Shown one piece after another: positions 104 to 21,400 of a stretch of 64,000 nucleotides of DNA. This DNA is from Macrostomum hystrix (taxonomy: Eukaryota > Animalia > Platyhelminthes): contig CATNEN010000038.1 in assembly GCA_950097015.1 (NCBI GenBank), positions 10,664,001 through 10,728,000 on the forward strand, written 5' to 3'. The notes under the pieces are model-generated. The model saw only the letters and a program-made list of their open reading frames with translations, was not told where the DNA came from and did not search any database. How positions within the stretch are numbered: position 1 is the first letter of the stretch; every line of letters starts with the position of its first letter. The translations under genes and the position numbers were made by a program.

Positions 104-3100
104 TTGGCAGGTCCGCCATCAGGCCGTGTTTTGTGGTGAATGGTGTTCCAGGTGATGGCAGTCTGCTGTCCGGTGGTGGCAGACTGGCCCAACTGAAATA
201 CAACCCGACCATTGAAGGCCGCCCTGAGTCGGGTAACAATGGAACGGCCATCTTCATTGTTGGGAAAATATGCGTCCCTGGCGATGCCCTTGTACTTAAC
301 GCCCTCGTGTGTTCCGGGCGGAAAATTGTATTTGATCACAATTGTGCCGAACTGGTTGAAGCCTTGAATGAAAGAAATACGACTCGTGTGTCAGGACTCG
401 TAAACTGATAATTCATTTATGGAATCTAACCATTGTACTGAAAGTACTCAAACCCTTCTCAATCTACTCAAACTGAAAGTACTCAAACTCTTCTCTATCA
501 ACTCAAACTGAAAGTACTCAAAACCTTCTCAATCTACTCAAACTGAAAGTACTCAAACCCTTCTCAATCTACTCAAACTGAAAGTACTCAAACCCTTCTC
601 AATCTACTCAAACTGAAAGTACTCAAACCCTTCTCAATCTACTCAAACTGAAAGTACTCAAACCCTTCTCAATCTACTCAAACTGAAAGTACTCAGACCC
701 TTCTCAATCTACTCAAACTGAAAGTACTCAAACCCTTCTCAATCTACTCAAACTGAAAGTACTCAAGCCCTTCTCAATCTACTCAAACTGAAAGTACTCA
801 GACCCTTCTCAATCTACTCAAACTGAAAGTACTCAAACCCTTCTCAATCTACTCAAACTGAAAGTACTCAAACCCTTCTCAATCTACTCAAACTGAAAGT
901 ACTCAAACCCTTCTCAATCTACTCAAACTGAAAGTACTCAAACCCTTCTCAATCTACTCAAACTGAAAGTACTCAAACCCTTCTCAATCTACTCAAACTG
1001 AAAGTACTCAAACCCTTCTCAATCTACTCAAACTGAAAGTACTCAAAACCTTCTCAATCTACTCAAACTGAAAGTACTCAAACCTTTCTCAATCTACTCA
1101 AACTGAAAGTACTCAAACCCTTCTCAATCTACTCAAACTGAAAGTACTCAAACCCTTCTCAATCTACTCAAACTGAAAGTACTCAAACCCTTCTCAATCT
1201 ACTCAAACTGAAAGTACTCAAACCCTTCTCAATCTACTCAAACTGAAAGTACTCAAACCCTTCTCAATCTACTCAAACTGAAAGTACTCAAACCCTTCTC
1301 AATCTACTCAAACTGAAAGTACTCAAACCCTTCTCAATCTACTCAAACTGAAAGTACTCAAACCCTTCTCAATCTACTCAAACTGAAAGTACTCAAACCT
1401 TTCTCAATCTACTCAAACTGAAAGTACTCAAACCCTTCTCAATCTACTCAAACTGAAAGTACTCAAACCCTTCTCAATCTACTCAAACTGAAAGTACTCA
1501 AACCCTTCTCAATCTACTCAAACTGAAAGTACTCAAACCTTTCTCAATCTACTCAAACTGAAAGTACTCAAACTCTTCTCTATCAACTCAAACTGAAAGT
1601 ACTCAAAACCTTCTCAATCTACTCAAACTGAAAGTACTCAAAACCTTCTCAATCTACTCAAACTGAAAGTACTCAAACCTTTCTCAATCTACTCAAACTG
1701 AAAGTACTCAAACCCTTCTCAATCTACTCAAACTGAAAGTACTCAAACCCTTCTCAATCTACTCAAACTGAAAGTACTCAAACCCTTCTCAATCTACTCA
1801 AACTGAAAGTACTCAAACCCTTCTCAATCTACTCAAACTGAAAGTACTCAAACCCTTCTCAATCTACTCAAACTGAAAGTACTCAAACCCTTCTCAATCT
1901 ACTCAAACTGAAAGTACTCAAACCCTTCTCAATCTACTCAAACTGAAAGTACTCAAACCTTTCTCAATCTACTCAAACTGAAAGTACTCAAACCCTTCTC
2001 AATCTACTCAAACTGAAAGTACTCAAACCCTTCTCAATCTACTCAAACTGAAAGTACTCAAACCCTTCTCAATCTACTCAAACTGAAAGTACTCAAACCC
2101 TTCTCAATCTACTCAAACTGAAAGTACTTAAACTCTTCTCTATCAACTCAAACTGAAAGTACTCAAACCCTTCTCAATCTACTCAAACTGAAAGTACTCA
2201 AACCCTTCTCAATCTACTCAAACTGAAAGTACTCAAACCCTTCTCAATCTACTCAAACTGAAAGTACTCAAACCCTTCTCAATCTACTCAAACTGAAAGT
2301 ACTCAAACCCTTCTCAATCTACTCAAACTGAAAGTACTCAAACCTTTCTCAATCTACTCAAACTGAAAGTACTCAAACCCTTCTCAATCTACTCAAACTG
2401 AAAGTACTCAAACCCTTCTCAATCTACTCAAACTGAAAGTACTCAAACCCTTCTCAATCTACTCAAACTGAAAGTACTCAAACCTTTCTCAATCTACTCA
2501 AACTGAAAGTACTTAAACTCTTCTCTATCAACTCAAACTGAAAGTACTCAAACCCTTCTCAATCTACTCAAACTGAAAGTACTCAAAACCTTCTCAATCT
2601 ACTCAAACTGAAAGTACTCAAAGAAACTTTTTAAACTACTCAAACTAAAAATTACTCAAAACCTTTTTAATCTACTCAAACCATAAGTAACCTTCTCAAA
2701 CTGCTCAACATGGGTTTAGCCAGCTAAGGCCTTACCCAACAGTGGCCGCTGGTCAATGCGCTCAATCATGCTGCCATTCGGTGGCTGATTGCCCACAGCC
2801 GGCCGGTAGCGCTGAAAGCAGAGAACGCATTTTCCGTCATTGGGCTGCAACGGATCACTCATCCTGTCAACGCAGCCGCGGCAAAGCTGACGCCCGTCAG
2901 GATCGCAGTGGAACGGAGCGCCGGTACAGTTGGCGGAGAACTCATTCGAGCAGATAAGACAGCTGCCGGATGCCGGGTTGTCAGGGTCGTTGTCAGGGAC
3001 CGTATCCATGGCCTCAGGAACACTCTCGTCGGGAGGAGCTGAGGCGATAGACTCAGGCGGCTGGTTATCTGAAATTTCAAATCAAATTTTAAATTTTACT

Positions 3101-5698
3101 TTTTTGATTTTTTCTCGCATGATTAAAAGTAGAGTAAAACTCATGCATTTTTAATTAGGAAAAATTCTCTTTGGAAACAGACCCCAGGGTGGGTTCAAGA
3201 AAATACACAGAACAACAGCCGGAGCATTGCTAAAAAATCATAAATTCTTTCTAACCGTAGCTCGTTGTCAATTATTTATTCGGAATTAGACAGCTCACAG
3301 TATGCCCTGTTGAAGGCTCTCTAAAATATATATTCAAGTCTGTGGAATTCATAATAAAGCTTATTGCACTACTTATTGACACTTTTTTGAATTACAAGTA
3401 GCATAGTAGACATTTTATGTTTTCTTCTAGTTTTGCACAGAAAAATAAATTACACAATTTAAAACCTGAATACATTAGGCGTTTTGTCATGAAAAGAGAT
3501 GAACAAAAAACGAGTAATCTGATATTCACTAGATACTACTGGGTTGTCAGTAGACAAGAAGCGTCTAAAACACTGGTCGGCAAACTTGTTAGCGTTCGGG
3601 ACACGGAGAGAATCGAAAAGACGACAGCATAAAATGAAGGAATATGAGAAAGATGGATAAGACTGGGGAGAAATGAGACAGGGAGAGATGAGATGAGACA
3701 GATTAGATGGAGAAGAGATTAGAAAGGGGGGGAGAAATGAGACAGGGGAGAAATGAGACAGGGGAGAAATGAGACAGGGGAGAAATGAGACAGGGGAGAA
3801 ATGAGACAGGGGAGAAATGAGACAGGGGAGAAATGAGACCGGGGAGAAATGAGACAGGGGAGAAATGAGTCCGGGGAGAAATGAGACAGGGGAGAAATGA
3901 GTCCGGGGAGAAATGAGACAGGGGAGAAATGAGTCCGGGGAGAAATAAGACGGGAGAAATGAGACAGGGGAGAAATGAGACAGGGGAGAGATGAGACAGG
4001 TGAGAGATGAGACAGGTGAGAGATAAGACAGAGAAGAGATGAGACGGAGAGATGAGATGAGACAGAGAAGAGATGAGACAGGGGAGAGATGAGACTGAGA
4101 TGAGATAAGACAGGAGAGATGAGACGGGAGACACGGGAGAGATATGACTCTCTATCTCCAGATGAGAGAGATGCAACAGGGAAAATACGAGATAGGATAC
4201 TATAGGTGTCGGAAGGGGCAACGGGCCGGATTTGGGAGCTTCGAGGGCCGGAGGCCGACCTATGGTCTCTAAAACGACTCACTAATCGACGCCAAAGCTG
4301 CAGATGCTGTCGACTGCGAAGTTGCAACTTCGCCCGGCAACCGCCTAGCAACGGCGCCAGCCAGAGCTAGCACAGCGTCGCGAGCAACGCAGCAGACGCG
4401 CAGCTCCAGCGTGGAAGCCTTGGAGGAGCCGCTGCCTGCGAGGGCCCCGGACTCGACTAAGCGGACAATGGCACCGGCCAGAGCCTCGGCCCATTCGTGC
4501 GATCCGCCGCCCCAAAGAGGCAGGCTGGAGCCTAGCGTTGGCATGGCAACGCTTTGCAGGCCTTCGCTAGAGGCCATTCGAGCCAGGCGAATAAGCAGAC
4601 GATCCAGGCAGTCGTCCATGGCGCGACTGAAGGGAGGTTCGGGAAAGGGAACTCATGATGAGCGATCAGCTTAAAGTAAATAATCTAATACTTAAAATCC
4701 CAAGAATCTGAAGCTACAAATCCCAAGAATCTGAAGCTACAAAATTCCAAGCATCTGAAGCTACAAATCCCAAGAATCTGAAGCTACAAATCCCAAGAAT
4801 CTGAAGCTACAAATCCCAAGAATCTGAAGCTACAAATCCCAAGAATCTGAAGCTACAAATCCCAAGAATCTGAAGCTACAAATCCCAAGAATCTGAAGCT
4901 ACAAATCCCAAGAATCTGAAGCTACAAATCCCAAGAATCTGAAGCTACAAATCCCAATAATCTGAAGCTACAAATCCCAAGAATCTGAAGCTACAAATCC
5001 CAAGAATCTGAAGCTACAAATCCCAAGAATCTGAAGCTACAAATCCCAAGAATTTGAAGCGCAAACCGGCGCACCGGAAGCTGTCTCCGCTGCCTAGCTG
5101 TCGCTCCAGACGTCGGTCATTGGGCAGAGCAATGAACAGAATCTTTCGGAAGCCTCCGCCGCCGCGATGGCACAGGTAGGTGTCACCAAAGGCCATGGCA
5201 CCGCCAGGCAGAGAGCTCAAGTGGCGCCTTGAATCTGTATCGACGTCTCTGCACCGGCTAGCAACAGCCTTGGCTAGTCCGTACTGCAGAGACAGTGTCA
5301 GGTTGGTGGGCACAATCAACAAGTCAACGCCGCCACCAGGCAGAGCAGTCAGGTCGGACAAATCGACTCGGAGCTGGCAGAGAGGACCGAAATGGAATAT
5401 GCGGCTATCTGAGTCCTGGCTGGATGAGTTGCTTTGAGCAGGCGGTGGCTGCTGCTGCTGCTGCTGCTGCTGCTGCGTGACTACAGGCGGCGAAGAAGAT
5501 GCGGACGCAGCTGCGGCCTCTGCTAGAAGGGCTTCAGGAAAAAGAGGTCGTCGTGGGCGCCTGCTGGCTGACGCTGGTGCGGGGACAGGTGCGACTGCCG
5601 CACCAGATGGCGTTGAAGCTTCGGTCTGGCAATGAGGAAAGTAAAACGACTTTATGACAGACAGACAGACAGGCATACCCAGAGACAGATAGACAGAC

Positions 5699-5750
<52 letters not shown>

Positions 5751-5777
5751 TGACAAAGAGACAGACAGAAGACAGAC

Positions 5778-5813
<36 letters not shown>

Positions 5814-7356
5814 CGACAAAGAGACAGACAGACAGAAGACAGACCGAAGACAGGCATACCCAAAGACAGACAGACAGACAGACAGACAGACCGACAAAGA
5901 GACAGACAGACACACAGACAGACAGACAGACAGACAGTCAGACAGGCATACCCAAAGACAGATAGACAGACAGACAGACAGACAGATAGACAGACCGACA
6001 AAGAGACAGACAGACAGACAGACAACGCACCCGAGAACTGACTGTGGCAGCAGCATAGGAGGTCCCAGCAGTAGGAGTCGACGCTGCTTGAGCAGCTGGG
6101 GCCGCTGCAGTCGCAGGTGCCTCTGCAGTCACAGGTGCCAGCTGCAGACGAGCCAGCCAGCTTAGAGCAGATTCCAGCACTTCCTCAGTGCAAGCAGCCA
6201 CAGAGACATACAGTGGCTCATTGGAGCCAGGCAGGCCAGGATTCAGGCAGCGGACAGAGGCACCAAACCACACACGGAGTTCCTCTGTAACAGCATCAAA
6301 GGCAGCGAGATGGCTGGGAAGCTGCATGACGCGGGCTCTGCTGGCGCAGCTGTCGGGCTAGATTTGAGAGTTAAATGCAATAAAAGAAGTATTTCTTGAC
6401 AAATTCCAAACCAAAAATTTAATATTCCTGCAACATGCAAGTTGCTTTTTTCAACTGTGACATTTCTTACCTTTTCATTACAGTCTAAAACCATGCACAA
6501 GTGACCATTTACTTCGATTTGACTTGAGCTTGACAGAACTGATTCTAGATAGGCATCTAAAAGAAGTGGAAGAGTACCAGTAGATAATTCAAATTGAAAT
6601 TCTTCTTATATATAAAAAAATAGAATATAAAACTCAGTTTAAAAACAGCTGAATTTTATAAATATGTCCATTTAAACATAACAATTACAAAAACAAAATT
6701 AGTGTGCTACAAAAATGCTTGTTAATGGGCCAGTTAATCACCAAACAAATATAGAGTTAAATGTATATAAAATATTAAGATACTTAAGCCAAGATAATAA
6801 GACCTACTAAAATTTGCATAACGCAGACTAAAATGTTTCTGTTCAGCTACTTTTCAAGTTCAAGTTAAAGAATGAATAGCAAAGTAGCTAACTATTATAT
6901 TTGCATAGCTACATTGTCATTGTCATAGACAAAAAATAAAGTAAGCATTTTTTCTGATTCAGATTTCAACTCAACAAAATAACTATTTCACTTTCCTTTG
7001 TATTACGAAATAGCAAAATTAATAATCCCATGAGAACCAGGGGTTATCAAAATAAAGATATCACCTTATTTAAAGTTCACTGCAATACATGAAATTTAGA
7101 AATGCTATAGCTAGCAGTCTAGTTCATATATACATTTATAGTCATCTAGTGGGCCTAAGCATTAACAACTGTGAAACGCTATACCTTTGTTTTTGAAGAA
7201 AACTTTTGCTTGCGATTCATCACCTTTATATGGCTTCAGAATACAAATAAAAGAATCTGGGAATGAGAACTGAAAGTAAGAGTGTAAAGCAAGCCAGTAC
7301 ACTTCCTCGATTTTTTCTTGACTTTCCTTAGAAAACTCTATAACGATCGAGAACAT
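104..7356 (-). CDS. Deltex-family (DTX3L-like) RING E3 ubiquitin ligase with an internal macrodomain; 3' partial
   Basis: Phase-consistent GT-AG exons: 7356-7185, 6556-6471, 6357-6031, 5625-5075, 4626-4283, 3068-2736, 362-104 (about 690 codons; last exon lies outside the window). Deltex C-terminal motifs: GNQP..G.M, LLG|[27 protein letters not shown]...[19 protein letters not shown]-like CLIC...C...CRGC...CVLC. Macrodomain motifs: [29 protein letters not shown]-terminal LHSYFQ...AKVFF is RRM-like. Confidence 0.88.
437..2700. repeat. 35-bp minisatellite (AAACTGAAAGTACTCAAACCCTTCTCAATCTACTC), about 62 copies
   Basis: Near-perfect period 35; fills Deltex intron 6. Confidence 0.97.
3571..4264. 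mobile_element. hAT-like MITE filled with a 16-bp GAGACAGGGGAGAAAT minisatellite
   Basis: Imperfect TIRs CACTGGTCGGC / (rc) CATAGGTCGGC. Flanks GTCTAAAA / GTCTCTAA (6 of 8 match). The unique segment 4195-4250 recurs at 50059-50114. Confidence 0.6.
4695..5060. repeat. 23-bp minisatellite (AAATCCCAAGAATCTGAAGCTAC)
   Basis: About 15 copies; Deltex intron 4. Confidence 0.95.
5656..6025. repeat. (GACA)n microsatellite
   Basis: Fills Deltex intron 3. Confidence 0.95.
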
Positions 7357-8599: not shown

Positions 8600-11500
8600 A
8601 TGTCTCCAAGAAAAATTACGGTGGCTGCTGCTGAGTCGGGAGACTTCAAAATGGCTCAGCAGCAGCCGGACCTGTCCCAACTGCAGAAGGACTCAACGGC
8701 GATGCCTTTCGCCGAGAAGCCGCTGGCGCTCCGTATCCTTGGCCTCCTGCTGGCTGTTGGCCTGCTGCTGCTGCTGTTGCACCAGTGGCGCCAGCTTTAT
8801 CGCGAATATTCGCAGTCGCCAACAGTGGCTTCAATGATGGCAGTGGAGAACTCGCCATTTCCCAGCGTGCTGGTGTGCAACAGTGTCCCGACCAGCTACA
8901 CGACGGTAACCGTTAATTGATGCTATTTTTAGAAACAATATTGGGGCAAAACCGAGGACCATTCTTAGAAGGTCGAGAGACAACGTTTAATTCTTAGAAA
9001 ATAGTTAGGAAAGCTGGCGGAAGATATATCACATACTAAAATAAATGCACACCATGTAGGATTACCAATGCCTTTACTTCACCAAACCAAATTTCCGCCC
9101 TTTACGATGAAACTTTACGACAAACTTTCAAAGCCGTCAGATTAAGCATCGTCGAGATGCTCAGCGATTTTTTTCGAAGACCCTTGTGACAAGGACAGCT
9201 AACGTTGCCCTGTGTGACTTTGGAATTAGCAGAGTAACGTAAGTTAGTTCCGTGTGAAAAGAAACATAAAGTTAGTTTCCGAGTTGCTTTATGTTTTAAT
9301 AAGCTGTCTCATGTCTCATCTCAAGCGTGTTATTCCGCTGTCTCCTGAGCACACACTCACACAGGGGTGTGTACATCTGGCCCTTACACATGACTAGCAG
9401 TGTACACTGTCACTGGGGACTTGTGGATGGGTCCTCAAGGCCATCAATTGCACAACAAAACCTTCTCTTTTCTCTCTCTCTAGCCGCGGTTAATTGATTT
9501 TCAAACTCGGCCTTTGAGATTTGATTGGCCAGCGTGTTTGTAACTATTTTTAGAATAGAACTTTGGGGAAACCACACCGCAGGTCCTGGCCCGGGCCCAG
9601 CAGCTGTTGGCAGTGGTGGCTGCGATGGCTCGCGATTTCAACGAGTCCCAGTTCGACAAGGCCAAGGCGGACATGCTGGGCGTGTTTTTCAGCTCCATGC
9701 CCGACGGTCTGGCCGCGGATTTGTTCGGCATCTGGCCGGAGACCTTCCTGCTGGACTGCAGCTTCAACGGAGCCAGGCGGTGCGTCAGTGGCGAGCACTA
9801 CAAAGTTTGGCGACACGAGCTCTACCTGAACTGTTTGCACTTTGAGTTCGACCCAGTTGAAGCAGCTTCGTTCAGCTCCCTGGAGATGACGCTGTTTGCC
9901 GAGAGTCTCGCCGGCACCGAGGAGGCGATGCGCCAGCTGCCCAGCCTCATGGGCGTCCCGCTGACCACCCTCGGCTTCGATGGCACCATCAGCGCCGATC
10001 GCTCCGCTGGCGTGGCCGTCTTCCTGCATCATCCTGGTGAGGGATGGGATTGCGTGGAGTGGGATTTGATGGGATGGGATATGATGGGATGCGATTTGAT
10101 GGGATGGGATTTGATGGGATGGGATTTGTTGAGATGGGATTTGATAGGATTTGATGGGGTGGGATTTGATGGGATGGAATTTGATGGGGTGGGATTTGAT
10201 GGGGTGGGATTTGATGGGATGGGATTTGATGGGATGGGATTTGATAGGATTTGATGGGGTGGGATTTGATGGGATGGGATTTGATAGGATTTGATGGGGT
10301 GGGATTTGATGGGATGGGATTTGATAGGATTTGATGGGGTGGGATTTGATGGGATGGGATTTGATGTCGTGGGATTTGATGGGATGGGATTTGATGGGAT
10401 GGGATTTGATGGGATAGGGTTTGATGGGATGGGATTTGATAGGATGGGGTTTGATAGGATAGGATTTGATAGGATTTGACGGGGTGGGATTTGAAGGAAT
10501 GGTGTTTAATGGGATGGGGTTTGATGGGATGGGATTTGATGGGATGGGATTTGAAGGAATGGGGTTTGATGGGATGGGGTTTGATGGGATGGGACTTGAT
10601 AGGATTTGATGGGATGGAATTTGATGGGATTTGATGGGATGGGATTTGATGGGGTGGGATTTGATAGGATTTGATGGGATTTGATGGGGTTTGATGGGAT
10701 CGGGTTTGATGGGATGGGATTTCATAGGATTGAACGTTAACATAACATTGTATTAAAAAGTTTATTAAGTGTTGCAAATATGCATTCACTGAGGAATTGC
10801 AATTACCCTTCAATCTTCCTCAGGAGGAATTCTGAGACACACGAATAATTTTCCTGTTAGAAGTTGTAAACAGCGTTGTAAACAATTCGCAAGAATCATA
10901 ATTTATTTTTTGTCAAACAGGTGCAACAGAGTTTTATTTCTAAGAATAGAAAGCGAGTCTGATTCCAATTAGTCGATATTGTCATTTGTCAATTTCGAAG
11001 GTGCAAATTGGGCAATTATCTTCTCACAATCTACTCATCAAACAGTGCCATCTGAGCTTGAGCACACAATTGTTGAAAATTTTACCTGGCTTCATCTGAA
11101 GCATTTTGAAATTAGAATAAAGCCCTTTCCTATTGTGCAGCTGCATTGTTGAGTTGATCGATTTTCCAATGCGGAACTCACAATATGAGAAACACACAAT
11201 ATGAGACATCTTGAATTCGCCAGTTACAAAGACACAACTGGCTTGGATTTAAAATCTACTCATGTTCGATTTTAATTCATTTCAAGTTGCCAGTTCGTGT
11301 TGTTTAATCGCTCCAGCAATTAACCCTGTTATAATCTCTATAGTCCATTCGATAATCTCTTCTAAAATCTATCCTCTAATGGCTCCCAATCCCTCAGATT
11401 ATCTCTGTCAGTCAATCCCAGATAATCTCGGGTACTTAATCCCTCAGTTATTCTGTCACCTAATCCCTAAAAAACTGTCACTTTATCCTTAGATAATATA

Positions 11501-13896
11501 TCACTAAATCCCTCAGATATTATCCTTCACTTAATCTCTCCAATAATCTGTCACTTAATCCATTGGATAATCTCTGTCGCTTAATCCATTCGATAATCTC
11601 TGTCACTTAATCCATTGGATAATCTCTGTCACTTAATCCATTCGATAATCTCTGTCGCTTAATCCATTCGATAATCTCTGTCGCTTAATCCATTCGATAA
11701 TCTCTCAGCTAAACGTAAAGATAATCTCTCGATTAGCTTTCAGAAAATCTCTCAGTTAGCTTATCTCTCTGAGAGTCTGTGTCAGTTAATCTATTTTTTT
11801 TAAATGTGATTTTGATTAGTTAAATGAGTTTTCTCACGCTTTGTCTAAGATAATCTCTCAAAAGATCCCACAACGGAGTGTTTGCCTCCGAGAGTCTTTA
11901 GACGCCAAAAATGACCTCTGCCACCCGCCTGTCAATCAAGAGTACTATCCGCACAGCGACTACAAGGTGATGCTGAGCACTGGCCGCGCTGTGACCCTGA
12001 CCTACAACAGGCAGCTGCTGCGCATGAAAAGCACGGCGGACAGGCCGTGCCGGGAGGCTGGCAGTCAGCTCCAGTACCGCGTCTGGAACGGCAGCGGCCT
12101 GCAGTGGCGAAGTTTCGAAGGCCGGCTCGCTGACTGCCGGCTGACGGCAATCATGGACTTTTATGAACGACTGTGCGCCTGCAGACCGCTGGGATATCCC
12201 ATTGTGAGGGCTCTCCTATGAATTAATCCCTAAATCTAGTTTTATTCTGCTCTGTAATCTACTCCAGAAACGAATCCCTAATTTCTTATTCTAATTTACT
12301 AATCAGTTCCTTAATCAACCCTAAAATCCATTCCTTAATCTACTCCATAATCCGTACCTTAATCGGAGTGTAATTTCTGTAAGAGGCTAGCGGACAATGG
12401 CACATCATTTGGTGACACCAGACCCGCAGCCAGCGAGGAGGCAATTCTGCCCATTTCGCTGACTCCTGAGCACACACGCAGACAGATACTGTACGCAGGC
12501 ATACGCTGACACTGGGGTGTGTACATCTGCCCTGACTTTCTCATCGTCAGGCAGTGTACACTTTCACTGTGCCTTGGAGGTTGGCCCTCAAGGGCGTAAA
12601 TTGCACGACAAGCCCCCAAGCCTTCTCTCCGCGGCTGCGCCCCAAATAAATGTGGCCTCGCCGCGGAATCGAGCTCAGGGACCTCTGCAACTCACCCCAC
12701 AATCCACTCCGCTATCGATAATTTGCTGTTATCCGTTCGTTAATCCGCGCCTCCAAATCCACCGCCGAAATCAAACACTGCAGGACCGTCGCCGCGGCGA
12801 GCTGCCATTCTGCCTGGACCGCAGCCGGCCCGGCTACACTCAACGGCTCGCCTGCTATCGCCAGGCCCGCGCCAACTACACAGCCGCCGCTGCAGTCTGG
12901 AGCCCGCGTCTTGGCGACTGCCTGGAGCCCTGCAGCCGCGGCCAACACGCGCTGTCAATCAGCAGCACACTCTGGCCGCTCTCCGGCAATGCCAAGGATC
13001 TGCTGGACACCGAAGCTGTTCCAAAGCTGATGTCGCGCGGTGCTTTCGGCGGCGCCAACTACCTCTCCAAGCTCAGCAGCCTCGTCGGGGATTATCCGCA
13101 ATCGGATCTGTTGCAGAATAGTAGCGGCCTGGAATTCTCCCAACTGGCCGGCATTAAACAGGCGGCGCCGTTAAGATTTAATGCCAATCTGTCCCGCCAG
13201 GTGTGGAGCCAGTACCTCACGGATGTGGTGGCAAGCAACTTTGTGAAACTAACGGTAAGAACTGTCCGCTATAACTGAATCTTGGTGGATACTGGAGAAT
13301 TGGAGCCTGGAGACGACAGGTGGGAGTGAGTAGAGTGACAGGCGAAAGTGAGTAGGGTGACAGGCGGGAGTTAGTATAGTGACAGACAGGAGTGAGTAGA
13401 GTGAGTCAGTAGGGAGTAGAGTGAGTCAGTAGGGAGTAGAGTGAGTCAGTAGGGAGTAGAGTGACAGGCTGGAGTGAGTAGAGTGACAGACGGGAGTGAG
13501 TAGAGTGAGTCAGTAGCGAGTAGAGTGACAGGCTGGAGTGAGTAGAGTGACAGGCGGGAGTGAGTAGAGTGCCAGTCAGGAAGGAGTGAGTAGAGTGACA
13601 GGCGGGAGTGCTTGAGGCAGGGTGAGGGTGATCTTCGCAGCCAGCCCATCCACCATGTCGGGATCATCCGTCAGATTCGGCCAGACGCGAAGCCCGCCAT
13701 GCTGATCTCCGAGGAGTGGAAGTACACCATAGTGAACATCTTCAGCGAGGTAGGCGGCCTACTCGGCCTGTTCCTAGGCTGGTCGGCCATGTCCGCGGTG
13801 GATCTGGCGCACCTGATCTACAGTCTGGTCAGGCTGGCGGCGCTACGCTGGCGCCAGAGAAACAGAAAGCGGCAGGTGTCCACCGAGATCGACTGA
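8600..13896 (+). CDS. DEG/ENaC (amiloride-sensitive sodium channel / ASIC-like) subunit, about 571 aa
   Basis: Exons 8600-8905, 9583-10036, 11941-12203, 12784-13254, 13675-13896, all GT-AG and in phase. TM1 (LRILGLLLAVGLLLLLL), post-TM1 FPSVLVCN, LLDCSFNG, YLNCLHF, Cys-rich thumb (CAC...C...C...CLEPC), TM2 FSEVGGLLGLFLGWSAMSAVDL with GxS filter. AATAAA at 13939. Confidence 0.92.
9085..9165 (-). mobile_element. 3' fragment of SINE family B
   Basis: TTCCGCCCTTTACGAT...AACTTTCAAAGCCGTC...CATCGT matches 36593-36645. Confidence 0.55.
9340..9490 (-). mobile_element. Diverged SINE family A fragment in ENaC intron 1
   Basis: CTCCTGAGCACACAC...GGGGTGTGTACATCTG...CAGTGTACACT...CCTCAAGG...AATTGCAC is colinear with 12460-12610. 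Confidence 0.6.
10040..10732. repeat. 15-bp G-rich minisatellite (GGGATTTGATGGGAT)
   Basis: Begins immediately after the ENaC exon 2 donor. Confidence 0.95.
11385..11780. repeat. 26-bp repeat (TTAATCCATTCGATAATCTCTGTCRC) with degenerate flanks
   Basis: Clean copies at 11555-11705. Confidence 0.8.
12370..12716 (-). mobile_element. tRNA-derived SINE family A, near-full copy in ENaC intron 3
   Basis: Minus strand: A box TAGCGGAGTGG (12714-12704) and B-box-like AGCTCGATTCC (12675-12665). Body is closely similar to the copies at 45750-45962 and 59885-60240. Confidence 0.8.
13315..13610. repeat. About 22-bp repeat (GGGAGTGAGTAGAGTGACAGGC)
   Basis: ENaC intron 4. Confidence 0.9.
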
Positions 13897-14056
13897 CGGA
13901 TCGCATAATCTAGAAATCCTAGAAAATCTTAAATAGAAAATAAAAGCCATTCTAGCTATCAGGTAATTTCATTAGCAAAATAGATACACCCTTTTTAACT
14001 GTGTGAATTAGCAATACAAGTCATTTTCACACACTAATAAGCTATCTGAATTTAAT

Positions 14057-18483: not shown

Positions 18484-21400
18484 TCAGAGGTTCCAATGCG
18501 GAGTGGCCGGTTCGCATTTCAAATTCGGAGGGACATCGCCAGACCCGGAGGTTTCCACATCTGACCGATGGACCTCCGCTTGGCTTTGCTGCTGCCGCTG
18601 CTGCTGCTGCCGTTGCTGATGCAGTTCAAACACCTCAATCAGCAGGGGATTCAGTTCCTCGTATCTGAATCCGACAATGTGGCAGAGCTGGCTGAACTCA
18701 GATGCCAGTATCTCTAGTTCGGACAGTCGGTTCATCAGGTCGAAGTAGACGCCCCTGGCTAGGTGCTGGGGGAAGCTGTGCTGCACGTAGCGCCACAGCA
18801 GCAGGATGTAGCCCTGCTGCACCCGGTCCACGCGGTGCATGTTGGCCAAGTTGGGCCTGGCCGGATTATAGAACTCAATCAGCTGCAGCAGCGTCAGGGC
18901 CAGCTGATCGCCGCGACTAACGTGGTGATAGTCGGTCATGAAGCGCTTGTAACGGCTTAGCAACTGCTCACCGTTGGGATAGACACTCAGAGACTGTGCC
19001 AGGCAGGCCAGGGACAGGGTGTGGTGACCGCCGAGCCTGTTGGACTCGAAGCTGAACGTGTTGTCAGCCGGATTGTAGATTGACACGCCGCGCATCAGAA
19101 TGAAGTGAAACACGCCGCCCTGGCCAAGGCAAGGATTTCGGATTACCAGTGGATTATTTAACTGGATTAGTGGACTATTAACCGAGTTACCGATAGATTT
19201 TCTGACGGGGTAATATGTGGAATTAGAAGTGGATTATTGGTGGATTATCGGACTGGATTTTAAAGTGGTTTTTAAAAAGGGTTATTAGCGGATTATGTAA
19301 CTGGATTATACAGTGGCTATAAAAACAGTGGATTATCGGACTGGATTTACATTGGCTTTTAGTTTCAGTGGATTATCGGACTGGATTTACATTGGCTTTT
19401 AATCTCAGTGGATTATCGGACTGGATTTACATTGGCTTTTAATTTCAGTGGATTATCGGACTGGATTTACATTGGCTTTTAATTTCAGTGGATTATCGGA
19501 CTGGATTTACAAAAAATCATAATCGCTCTCACCTTGATGAGGTTGACCATGTCGGGCTGGTCAATCAGGCTGTACTCCGGCAGTCGCTTGATGAACAGCA
19601 CAAACCGCTGCACAAACGACAGCGTGATTGCGAAGGGCGCCTCCAGCGTCACCGGCGCATTGGCTGTGGACTGGATTTCAGTGGAATCCTGCGAATCCAC
19701 ATTGTTCATGACTTCGTCTAGGGCGCAGCGGATGACGCCGATGATGGCGGCGCTGGCTGGCGACAATGGCCTGCCGCCGGTCCAGCGCGGTACTTCGGGC
19801 TCCGGCTCGTTCTCGCACATGAAGGCCAGCACGCTGGGCCGCTCGACGGTGTCTAAGGATGATGGCGGCGGCGGCGGCGGATGCGGTGGCAGCGGCGAAA
19901 TCGGGCTGATGCTGGGGAAAAACGATTGACGAGAATGCGGCTCCAACTGAGGCGTCGATGGATTCGGCGGCGGAGGCGGGGGAGGCGGCGGCGGCGGCGC
20001 TTGCTGAGCATGGAAGTTCCTGCTGACGCCCCCGACGCCACTACCATTAGCGAAGCAGTTGAGGCTGCTCTCCAGCTTCAATATTGGCAGCTGCATTGAC
20101 ATCTGCTGCTGCTGAATGGGGGGCGTCAGGCTCTGCGCCGGACTGGGACACGGCGGCGCTTGGGTGGGCGTCACCCCGACGCGCGTTTCCCGATTGCAGC
20201 GGGTCTTCTCGCGACGCTGCTGCAGCTCGGATTCGTCTTTCGAGCGAGTGAGGGGTGTCAGGGGTTGATGTGTTGATGACAAGGGATGTCAAATTGTCAA
20301 GTATCGAGTTATTGGGTTGTCAGGTGTAAGGCTGTCAGGTGTCGGGTTGTCAGGTGTCGGGTTGTCAGGTGTAGGGCTGTCAGGTGTCGGGTTGTCAGGT
20401 GTAGGGCTGTCAGGTGTCGGGTTGTCAGGTGTAGGGTTGTCAGGTGTCGGGTTGTCAGGTTGTCAGGTGTAGGGTTGTCATGTGTCGGGTTGTCATGTGT
20501 AGGGTGGTCAGGCATCGGGTTTTCAGGTGTAGGGTTGTCAGGTGTCGGGTTGTCAGATAGGGCTGGACTCACTGAGTATCCAGTCCTTCTTCATGCCGAT
20601 TCGGAAGCACTTTTTCAGCCGGCAGGCGGAGCAAAACTTCCTGGTGTTGATGGTCACGTCGCAGGCGCCGGAGAAGTTGCACTTCTGCTCCTAAACGAGC
20701 GAATCATGAACCAGGAAAAGATGGTTGCATCTAGAGCTTCAATTGTATTTAACTTAGACGCCTAAATATGTACGTATATAGACTGCTGACATAATTGATT
20801 ATGTAATCCGAATCTATCTAATTTTCAATTGGAAACAATCTAGGGATTTGAGATCCTTTGAAAGCATATCTAGGGATTTGAGATCCTTTGGAAACAAATC
20901 TAGGGATTCGAGATCCTTTGAAAGCATATCTAGGGATTTGAGATCCTTTGGGAACAAATTTAGGGATTCGAGATCCTTTGAAAGCAAATCAAGGGATTTG
21001 AGATCCTTTGGGGACAAATCTAGGGACTTGAGATCCTTTGGGAAAAATTCTAGGGATTTGAGATCCTTTAGAAACAAATCAAGGAATTTGAGATCCTTTG
21101 GGAACAAATTTAGGGATTCGAGATCCTTTGGGAACAAATTTAGGGATTCGAGATCCTTTGAAAGCAAATCAAGGGATTTGAGATCCTTTGGGAACAAATA
21201 TAGGGATTTGAGATCCTTTGGGAACAAATTTAGGGATTCGAGATCCTTTGAAAGCAAATCAAGGGATTTGAGATCCTTTGGGGACAAATCTAGGGATTTG
21301 AGATCCTTTGGGGAAAAATCTAGGGATTTGAGATCCTTTGAAAGCAAATCAAGGGATTTCATATCATTTGGGAACTAATCAAGAGATTTGAGATTCGAAA

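Follow-up and report, generated by a model that had tools for sequence, protein, structure and literature searches.

A DTX3L-like Deltex ligase gene of the flatworm Macrostomum hystrix with a divergent, predicted macro fold in the same chain

The DTX3L-PARP9 pair is a central node of ADP-ribosylation and ubiquitin in vertebrate antiviral and DNA-damage responses, and the origin of this two-protein arrangement is only now being worked out. Can reader and ligase be held in one chain instead? The question is raised by 64,000 nucleotides of the flatworm Macrostomum hystrix (GenBank assembly GCA_950097015.1, contig CATNEN010000038.1, positions 10,664,001 to 10,728,000; this whole stretch is called the window). 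In it, an earlier note, made from the letters alone, had joined seven exons between 7356 and 104 into a single frame with RRM-like, possibly KH-like, macro, RING-like and Deltex C-terminal (DTC) parts, and had taken the result for a new fusion of the DTX3L/PARP9 logic. Here, we show that the locus is an intact, transcribed gene in which the macro exons are spliced to the RING exon. In our preferred reading, to which we give a probability of about 0.55, it is a DTX3L-like Deltex E3 ubiquitin ligase gene with a divergent macro fold in its chain; the RING-like and DTC parts would carry out ubiquitin transfer, the macro fold would tether the ligase, and the architecture would be an old one that has been retained.

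The gene is on the minus strand. Seven of its coding exons lie in the window, between 7356 and 104, and an eighth is outside it, about 0.6 kb before the window start. The frame opens with an ATG at 7356-7354 and, as read from the sequence, all seven window exons have GT..AG borders and consistent phases and are free of stops and frameshifts; their coordinates and phases are all as the earlier note had given them. The coding exons are as follows.

7356-7185, minus strand: coding exon 1, from the ATG to a phase-1 end; beginning of the RRM-like N-terminal domain
6556-6471, minus strand: coding exon 2, 86 nt, between acceptor ttttag and donor gtaaga; continues the RRM-like domain
6357-6031, minus strand: coding exon 3; KH-like beta-alpha-beta-beta-alpha unit, then an Ala/Pro-rich tail
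5625-5075, minus strand: coding exon 4; low-complexity linker at 5625-5416, N-terminal half of the predicted macro fold at 5415-5075
4626-4283, minus strand: coding exon 5; C-terminal half of the predicted macro fold, with a long helix, a loop and a final strand and helix
3068-2736, minus strand: coding exon 6; divergent RING-like finger, preceded by an acidic/Pro linker and followed by the GNQPPNG linker that leads to the DTC
362-104, minus strand: coding exon 7; DTC without its last third, IHHKT included
-605 to -671 relative to the window (L009:9395-9329), minus strand: coding exon 8 (terminal), acceptor ctgcag; end of the DTC (HGYPD...SDEL...stop)

Exon 4 opens with about 70 codons of a linker rich in Ala, Pro, Ser and Gln, and the macro half that follows runs from beta1 to beta6 and includes LSDLT, VPTN and QYGLAKAV. 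Position 104 is a donor (aa, then gtaagt) and not the end of the gene; if the in-frame TAA at 103-101 were taken as the stop, the DTC would miss its last third. That third is supplied by exon 8, which was read in the 10 kb preceding the window and whose product is N-HGYPDPGYLKRVSDELSALGY-stop. The single frame proposed in the earlier note stands, and its limits do not: the gene runs past 104, and the macro part occupies only about 5415-5075 plus 4626 to about 4326. The order in the chain is RRM-like domain, KH-like unit, disordered linker, divergent macro fold, linker, divergent RING and DTC.

Contigs from public runs were aligned to window positions 2650-4700. A contig of 1615 nt from run X6 covers 2735-3068 and 4283-4632 and passes directly over the 1214 nt between them (3069-4282), with a joint at 4283/3068 that reads CT..AC on the plus strand and hence GT..AG on the gene strand. 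Since the non-repeat DNA of the intron has no coverage, we take the contig to be derived from cDNA. Past 4632, the contigs of X6 and X7 carry 30 letters that match the end of exon 4 (window 5110-5081) in reverse complement; the alignment of letters 4632-4627 contains 1 mismatch, which fits the mRNA (cttccg, junction 5075/4626) as opposed to the intron (cttcag). The same junction is crossed colinearly by the ortholog in Macrostomum lignano (P0001; UniRef A0A1I8JAE9, named 'E3 ubiquitin-protein ligase', 739 amino acids), which reads SGDSFR and then RAMD. Towards the 3′ end, the X6 contig has 351 letters between exon 6 and its match to the 3′ untranslated region (3′UTR); exon 7, exon 8 and the start of the UTR predict about 350, and intron 7, if retained, would contribute 708. 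The junction of exons 6 and 7 (2736/362) is seen in contig X1 of a related organism; X1 reaches an exon-7-like start, L-P-G-F-I-Q-F-G, against L-L-G-F-N-Q-F-G in the window gene. Junctions among exons 1 to 4 were assigned by homology to P0001, and the read evidence covers the gene from the end of exon 4 onwards. Taken together, these results show that the macro exons and the RING exon lie on one transcript, and both of the junctions on which the earlier note's single chain depended (5075/4626 and 4283/3068) are borne out.

The M. lignano ortholog can be aligned colinearly with the whole gene, exons 1 to 8 (MFSFVVEF to SDELSALGY). When exon 5 was run with HMMER over 1.84 billion representatives, P0001 was the one real match (70% identity, residues 383-482). 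A further hit in the same pass, P0002 (E 6.6e-4), is a repeat protein of bacterial type in which Pfam finds no relevant domain, and it was taken as chance. Homolog searches with P0001 returned nothing but P0001, both with the full-length protein, where low-complexity words swamped the search, and with its macro region alone. Identity to P0001 is 61% for exon 1 (residues 1-57), about 43% by eye for exon 2 (residues 58-85; L-E-S, S-Q, N-G-H-L and D are kept), 24-37% for exon 3, 71% for the structured part of exon 4 and 66-73% for the macro exons; it is 61% for the RING-like block when trimmed, 43% over the whole of exon 6, and 75% for the DTC exon 7. Between the two species, the macro exons are thus conserved about as well as DTC exon 7 and better than the RRM-like exon 1 and the KH-like exon 3.

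A DTC scan of the M. hystrix genome found two DTC loci only, and no WWE-type Deltex among them. The second locus is a paralog on contig C1 (6828659-6831850, minus strand; L012 2659-5850), which was mapped from the first, RRM-like exon as far as the DTC, the terminal exon not being sought. It has the same RRM-like, KH-like, macro, RING and DTC layout and is about 35% identical to the window gene. Its intron positions differ: the C-terminal macro half and the RING are within one uninterrupted exon of 232 codons, and an extra intron follows directly after the last RING Cys pair. The single macro and RING exon of the paralog is independent evidence that both parts form one protein, and the layout common to both DTC genes of the genome indicates that it is older than their duplication.

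What is the part between the KH-like unit and the RING? Because intron 4 splits the macro domain of the window gene, an AlphaFold2 (AF2) model was built on P0001 in place of the window protein, with an alignment 3 deep that held Macrostomum rows only and no known macrodomain. The mean predicted local distance difference test score (pLDDT) is 51 over the whole chain and 62-86 in most core macro elements. Residues 268-475, which correspond to window 5415-5075 plus 4626 to about 4326, have their strands and helices in macro order. The top Foldseek matches of the model in the PDB are macroH2A1.1, PARP14 MD2 and MD3, and PARP9 MD1 (E 3e-7, or 3.2e-7 unrounded; probability 1.00; template modelling score on the target 0.6-0.69), and VIA-align gave Z 13-14.8 with 170-190 aligned residues and a root-mean-square deviation of 3.1-3.9 Å over residues 268-475. 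In a language-model Atlas, PF01661 accounts for 27/30 of the nearest clusters, and exon 5 alone gives leads to Macro and ThsA_Macro. An hhalign comparison with the canonical macrodomain of a snail protein (described below) is colinear, though weak (P 0.005 in the local and 0.017 in the global alignment), in the register SDLTSLP..DLVIVPSN..FGLAKAV against DITKLPVDAIVNAAN..GGGVAAAI of the snail. The macrodomain that the earlier note had named is thus matched, in the ortholog model, by solved macrodomain structures, and on this modelling the macro fold is real and under constraint.

Searches of PDB sequences with phmmer gave nothing significant for exons 5 and 6. For exon 4, they gave a quinone oxidoreductase (2oby/2j8z, E 6e-6), which was rejected as a compositional coincidence of Gly-rich beta-alpha-beta elements because the alignment begins within the poly-Q/Ala linker and because MDR-type enzymes (the quinone-oxidoreductase family) are absent from the fold-search results, where macrodomains are listed.

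The identity of the C-terminal part is clear. Domain searches were run exon by exon or on P0001, and the Pfam DTC model (PF18102) matches exon 7 alone at E 6.6e-25 (88 bits against a 25-bit cut-off) and P0001 at 4.4e-39 over profile positions 2-132 of 133. In a pairwise ranking against the PDB, exon 7 is closest to DTX3L (3pg6, 1.8e-17), followed by DTX2 (2.2e-13) and DTX1 (6.7e-13). The first His of IHHKT in exon 7 and the Glu of SDEL in exon 8 are 26 residues apart; the DTC pocket residues are His582/Glu608 in DTX2 (Zhu et al. 2022) and are quoted in the literature as H707/E733 in DTX3L. By alignment, then, the presumed catalytic His and Glu of the DTC pocket are kept, with the spacing found in DTX2 and DTX3L. 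The position of DTX3L Y719 is a His here, as in DTX2. Upstream of the DTC, the RING-like finger has the pattern C-x2-C-x14-H-C-x7-C-x2-C-x14-C-x2-C, and all three Macrostomum sequences (window gene, P0001, paralog) have its eight Cys/His; its second half, together with the GNQPPNG linker, aligns to the RING-DTC structures of DTX1 and DTX2.

The N-terminal modules are more divergent. An AF2 model of exon 3 alone, from a 3-row alignment, folds as beta-alpha-beta-beta-alpha with pLDDT 65-88 over residues 1-72. Type I KH domains make up about 30 of the 50 highest-ranked PDB neighbours, with middling Z values of 7-9; they include the KH of PNPase (Z 9.1), the KH of N4BP1 (8.8) and KH3 of hnRNP K (8.2). 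The unit is without a GXXG motif, and the predicted fold gives modest support for calling it KH-like. The N-terminus has the beta-alpha-beta-beta-alpha-beta topology of an RRM in a low-confidence model (P0001 residues 2-85, pLDDT 49-66), and exon 1 gave no Pfam match. Pfam scans of the exons and of P0001 showed no WWE domain.

How might such a protein work? In the preferred reading, the RING-like finger would bring E2~ubiquitin, and the DTC pocket would hold ADP-ribose, so that ubiquitin could be transferred onto ADP-ribose or onto a nearby lysine, a reaction demonstrated for DTX2 and DTX3L. The in-chain macro fold would tether the ligase to ADP-ribosylated targets, the role that the PARP9 macrodomains have in trans for tetrapod DTX3L. 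Candidate writers of the ADP-ribose are at hand in the about 20 or more PARP catalytic loci of the genome. The adenine-contacting Asp (SDLT or RDIT; LSDLT in the window gene) is kept in the window gene, P0001 and the paralog, and the Asn is kept in the window gene (VPTN) and P0001, with Ser in the paralog (VTTS). The blocks best conserved against the roughly 35%-identical paralog are those that line the pocket, LSL.FGLA, ILF.ALPND and VAM..G..LP.W, which points to a constrained pocket.

The gene was next compared with known systems. It resembles human DTX3L in its predicted RRM-like and KH-like N-terminal modules, in a RING-like finger followed by a C-terminal DTC, in having no WWE, in a DTC closest to structure 3pg6 with the putative catalytic His/Glu kept, and in length, which is nearly the same (739 amino acids in the M. 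lignano ortholog). It differs in that a macro fold is predicted between the KH-like part and the RING, whereas the human protein has further KH-like domains there and borrows the macrodomains of PARP9; one KH-like unit is seen in the flatworm protein. Its RING also has an adjacent His-Cys where the human has C-x-H, and its residue at the Y719 position is His. PARP14, PARP9 and macroH2A provide the best structural neighbours of the macro fold, with only 9-18% sequence identity, and the flatworm chain has altered ligand loops and no ART domain. PARP9 and DTX3L together resemble the domain set of PARP14 (Kar et al. 2026).

The closest parallel in architecture is a gastropod protein. When the RING-DTC part of P0001 was used as the query, a hypothetical protein of Batillaria attramentaria was found (BaRGS_00035712, 970 amino acids; P0003), in which Pfam recognizes Macro (3.4e-30), RING and DTC in that order. 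The two share the Macro-RING-DTC order in one chain, and the RING-DTC is 39% identical to that of P0001 over 96% of the region. In the snail, however, the macrodomain is canonical (NAAN, GGGV) and the RING is above the Pfam thresholds, whereas the flatworm macro is single and unrecognized by sequence models. Between the canonical macrodomain and the RING of the snail protein, a second, degenerate macro-like segment can be seen by eye at residues ~550-745, where Pfam makes no call; this tandem arrangement resembles that of PARP9 and PARP14. According to a preprint (Picard et al. 2026, bioRxiv 10.64898/2026.04.23.720386), DTX3L predates extant Metazoa, most metazoan DTX3L orthologs consist of RRM and RING-DTC, and the DTX3L macrodomain was lost when PARP9 emerged. 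The flatworm gene fits the description given there of macro-bearing, non-tetrapod DTX3L; its accessible text names no flatworm or mollusc, and the InterPro domains it uses would miss a macro as divergent as this one.

With a gastropod Macro+RING+DTC protein on the one hand and the preprint on macrodomain loss on the other, the single-chain form looks ancestral, and it has already been reported. Of the 'Rosetta-stone fusion' that had been proposed for this locus, the presence of macro, RING-like and DTC parts in one chain and one frame holds up; the polarity of a fusion and its novelty do not, in view of the Batillaria protein and of the macro-bearing DTX3L of Picard et al. 2026. The claim that the architecture is new has therefore to be given up; most likely, Spiralia have retained it from an old form, and it is not a new fusion. 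What is new here is its occurrence in flatworms, in both Deltex genes of the genome, and a macro part so divergent that UniProt/Pfam lists the DTC only for the M. lignano protein. Our literature searches found no experimental literature on Macro-RING-DTC proteins.

Several observations weigh against the preferred reading. The macro part was not recognized from sequence: Pfam searches of the single exons and of P0001 gave no macrodomain at any E up to 1, a genome-wide PF01661 scan found five other loci above the cut-off and not this one, and a profile of the three Macrostomum sequences gave DTC matches only, and no macro, among PDB sequences. The fold evidence comes from the model of a 70%-identical ortholog with a 3-sequence alignment and not from the window's own joined protein. 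In the pocket, loop 1 reads QYG, EFG or NFG instead of GGG, with one of the three glycines kept, and loop 2 reads L-P-[LF]-W-G (LPLWG in the window gene), with a 2-residue insertion that brings in a Pro, instead of G-[IV]-[YF]-G; the paralog is without the loop-2 Gly. Since both glycine loops are altered, ADP-ribose binding by the macro fold may have been lost or changed, to judge from these residues. The RING-like finger stays below threshold in the Pfam RING models (zf-RING_2 0.46 and FYVE about 0.055-0.058, on P0001), and its ligands 3 and 4 are an adjacent His-Cys pair and not the C-x-H that would be expected.

These loops are where the rivals to ADP-ribose tethering begin. In the main rival, the same gene and fold would have a macrodomain that no longer binds ADP-ribose and acts as a scaffold or regulator, by docking on the DTC or RING or through a partner protein or another nucleotide-like ligand, and we regard this as a possibility to be taken seriously, if a doubtful one. 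The failure of Pfam and of profiles to recognize the domain would be explained, as would the single remaining loop-1 glycine, the loop-2 insertion and the paralog's lack of both the Asn and the loop-2 Gly. MacroH2A1.2 and macroH2A2 are non-binding macrodomains and offer a precedent; they are among the structural neighbours, with Z tied with that of binders. Yet the Asp is kept in all three sequences and the Asn in two, and the blocks most conserved between the paralogs are those lining the pocket. Another reading, which we think unlikely, is that the macro has been retuned to another ligand, such as a ubiquitin-ADP-ribose product or ADP-ribose on nucleic acids, or has become a regulator that docks in cis on the DTC pocket; if this were true, the ADP-ribose-ubiquitin module of flatworms would be self-contained, and its specificity would be one that vertebrates do not show. 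That the domain is an eraser, an ADP-ribosylhydrolase like PARP9 MD1 or PARP14 MD1, seems quite improbable to us. MacroD-type catalysis needs a Gly-rich loop 1 and acidic/His residues after it, and here bulky residues replace that loop. PARP9 MD1 and PARP14 MD1 are indeed among the structural neighbours (Z 12.7-13.3), but the Z values of the neighbours are tied and do not discriminate between the classes. Both of these domains are hydrolytically active (review, Kar et al. 2026).

Other rivals concern how the chain came about. In place of an old architecture, the gene could be a derived, flatworm-specific fusion in which a macrodomain was brought into a DTX3L-like gene independently of the mollusc protein. 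Its macro region has no sequence-detectable relatives outside Macrostomum, hhalign gives a weak match to MD1 of the mollusc protein (P 0.005-0.017) and none to MD2, and a decayed copy of the gene's 3′ end in intron 5, just before the RING exon, could be read as the scar of a local rearrangement. However, that copy derives from the gene's own 3′ end and marks no boundary between former genes. The layout is common to the two DTC genes and thus predates their duplication, the gastropod protein has Macro, RING and DTC in the same order, and macro-bearing DTX3L orthologs are placed before the rise of PARP9 by Picard et al. 2026; we consider such a fusion improbable. Finally, the gene model could be an artefact that joins separate macro and RING-DTC genes, or a pseudogene. 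A shorter transcript might in principle terminate at the 3′-end-like copy in intron 5, but exons 5 and 6 are directly spliced in the X6 contig, the 739-residue ortholog is colinear, the paralog holds both parts in one exon, and the exons have neither stops nor frameshifts. The artefact is already contradicted by these observations, and we leave it hardly any probability.

The preferred reading, a DTX3L-like ligase with a retained in-chain macro fold, makes the flatworm gene an independent data point for reader and ligase having once been in one chain. Since its macro is invisible to Pfam, surveys that rely on domain databases will undercount this architecture. M. lignano is a laboratory model in which RNA interference (RNAi) is available, and a single-chain ligase could show there what the macro contributes to ADP-ribose ubiquitylation without a PARP9 partner.

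The exon 4 linker, which leads from the KH-like unit to the macro fold and is elsewhere of low complexity, contains the conserved motif R-R-P-L-F-P-E-A-L (window 5562-5536; P0001 residues 211-219), which the paralog has as K-R-P-L-F-P-G-V-F (L012 about 4868-4842). It may serve in docking or processing.

The 3′-end copy in intron 5 was located with blastn, and introns 3 to 6 are each filled with their own tandem repeat.

3119-3554, minus strand: intron 5 relic, 77% identical to window -1112 to -686 (L009 8888-9314)
440-2700: intron 6 array, a 35-mer repeated about 64 times
3657-4131: intron 5 array, a 16-mer family
4700-5060: intron 4 array, a 24-mer repeated about 15 times
5660-6025: intron 3 array, CTGT-rich

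The relic copies the tail of the terminal exon (the last coding codons), the 3′UTR and downstream DNA, and lies just upstream of the RING exon; apart from it and the original, the genome has no further copy. The relic was probably left by a local duplication and is outside the mRNA seen: the X6 coverage that falls on it is the real 3′UTR misaligned there, with 13 mismatches and 27 gap letters. It might act as an alternative 3′ end and so yield an isoform with the macro part only, for which no RNA support was seen in the contigs.

Two further sets of exons were recognized by eye near the gene. No PARP or macro gene adjoins the flatworm ligase among these neighbours, in contrast to the head-to-head DTX3L-PARP9 pair of vertebrates.

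8600-13900, plus strand: exons of a DEG/ENaC-type channel, with FPSVLVCN near the start and a GLFLGWS-type end
18484-20282, minus strand: exons of a nuclear-receptor ligand-binding domain

Short contigs of the RNA-type runs pile up on the intron 5 array, presumably from copies elsewhere, and the paralog on C1 and the flanking DNA show the same habit of tandem arrays.

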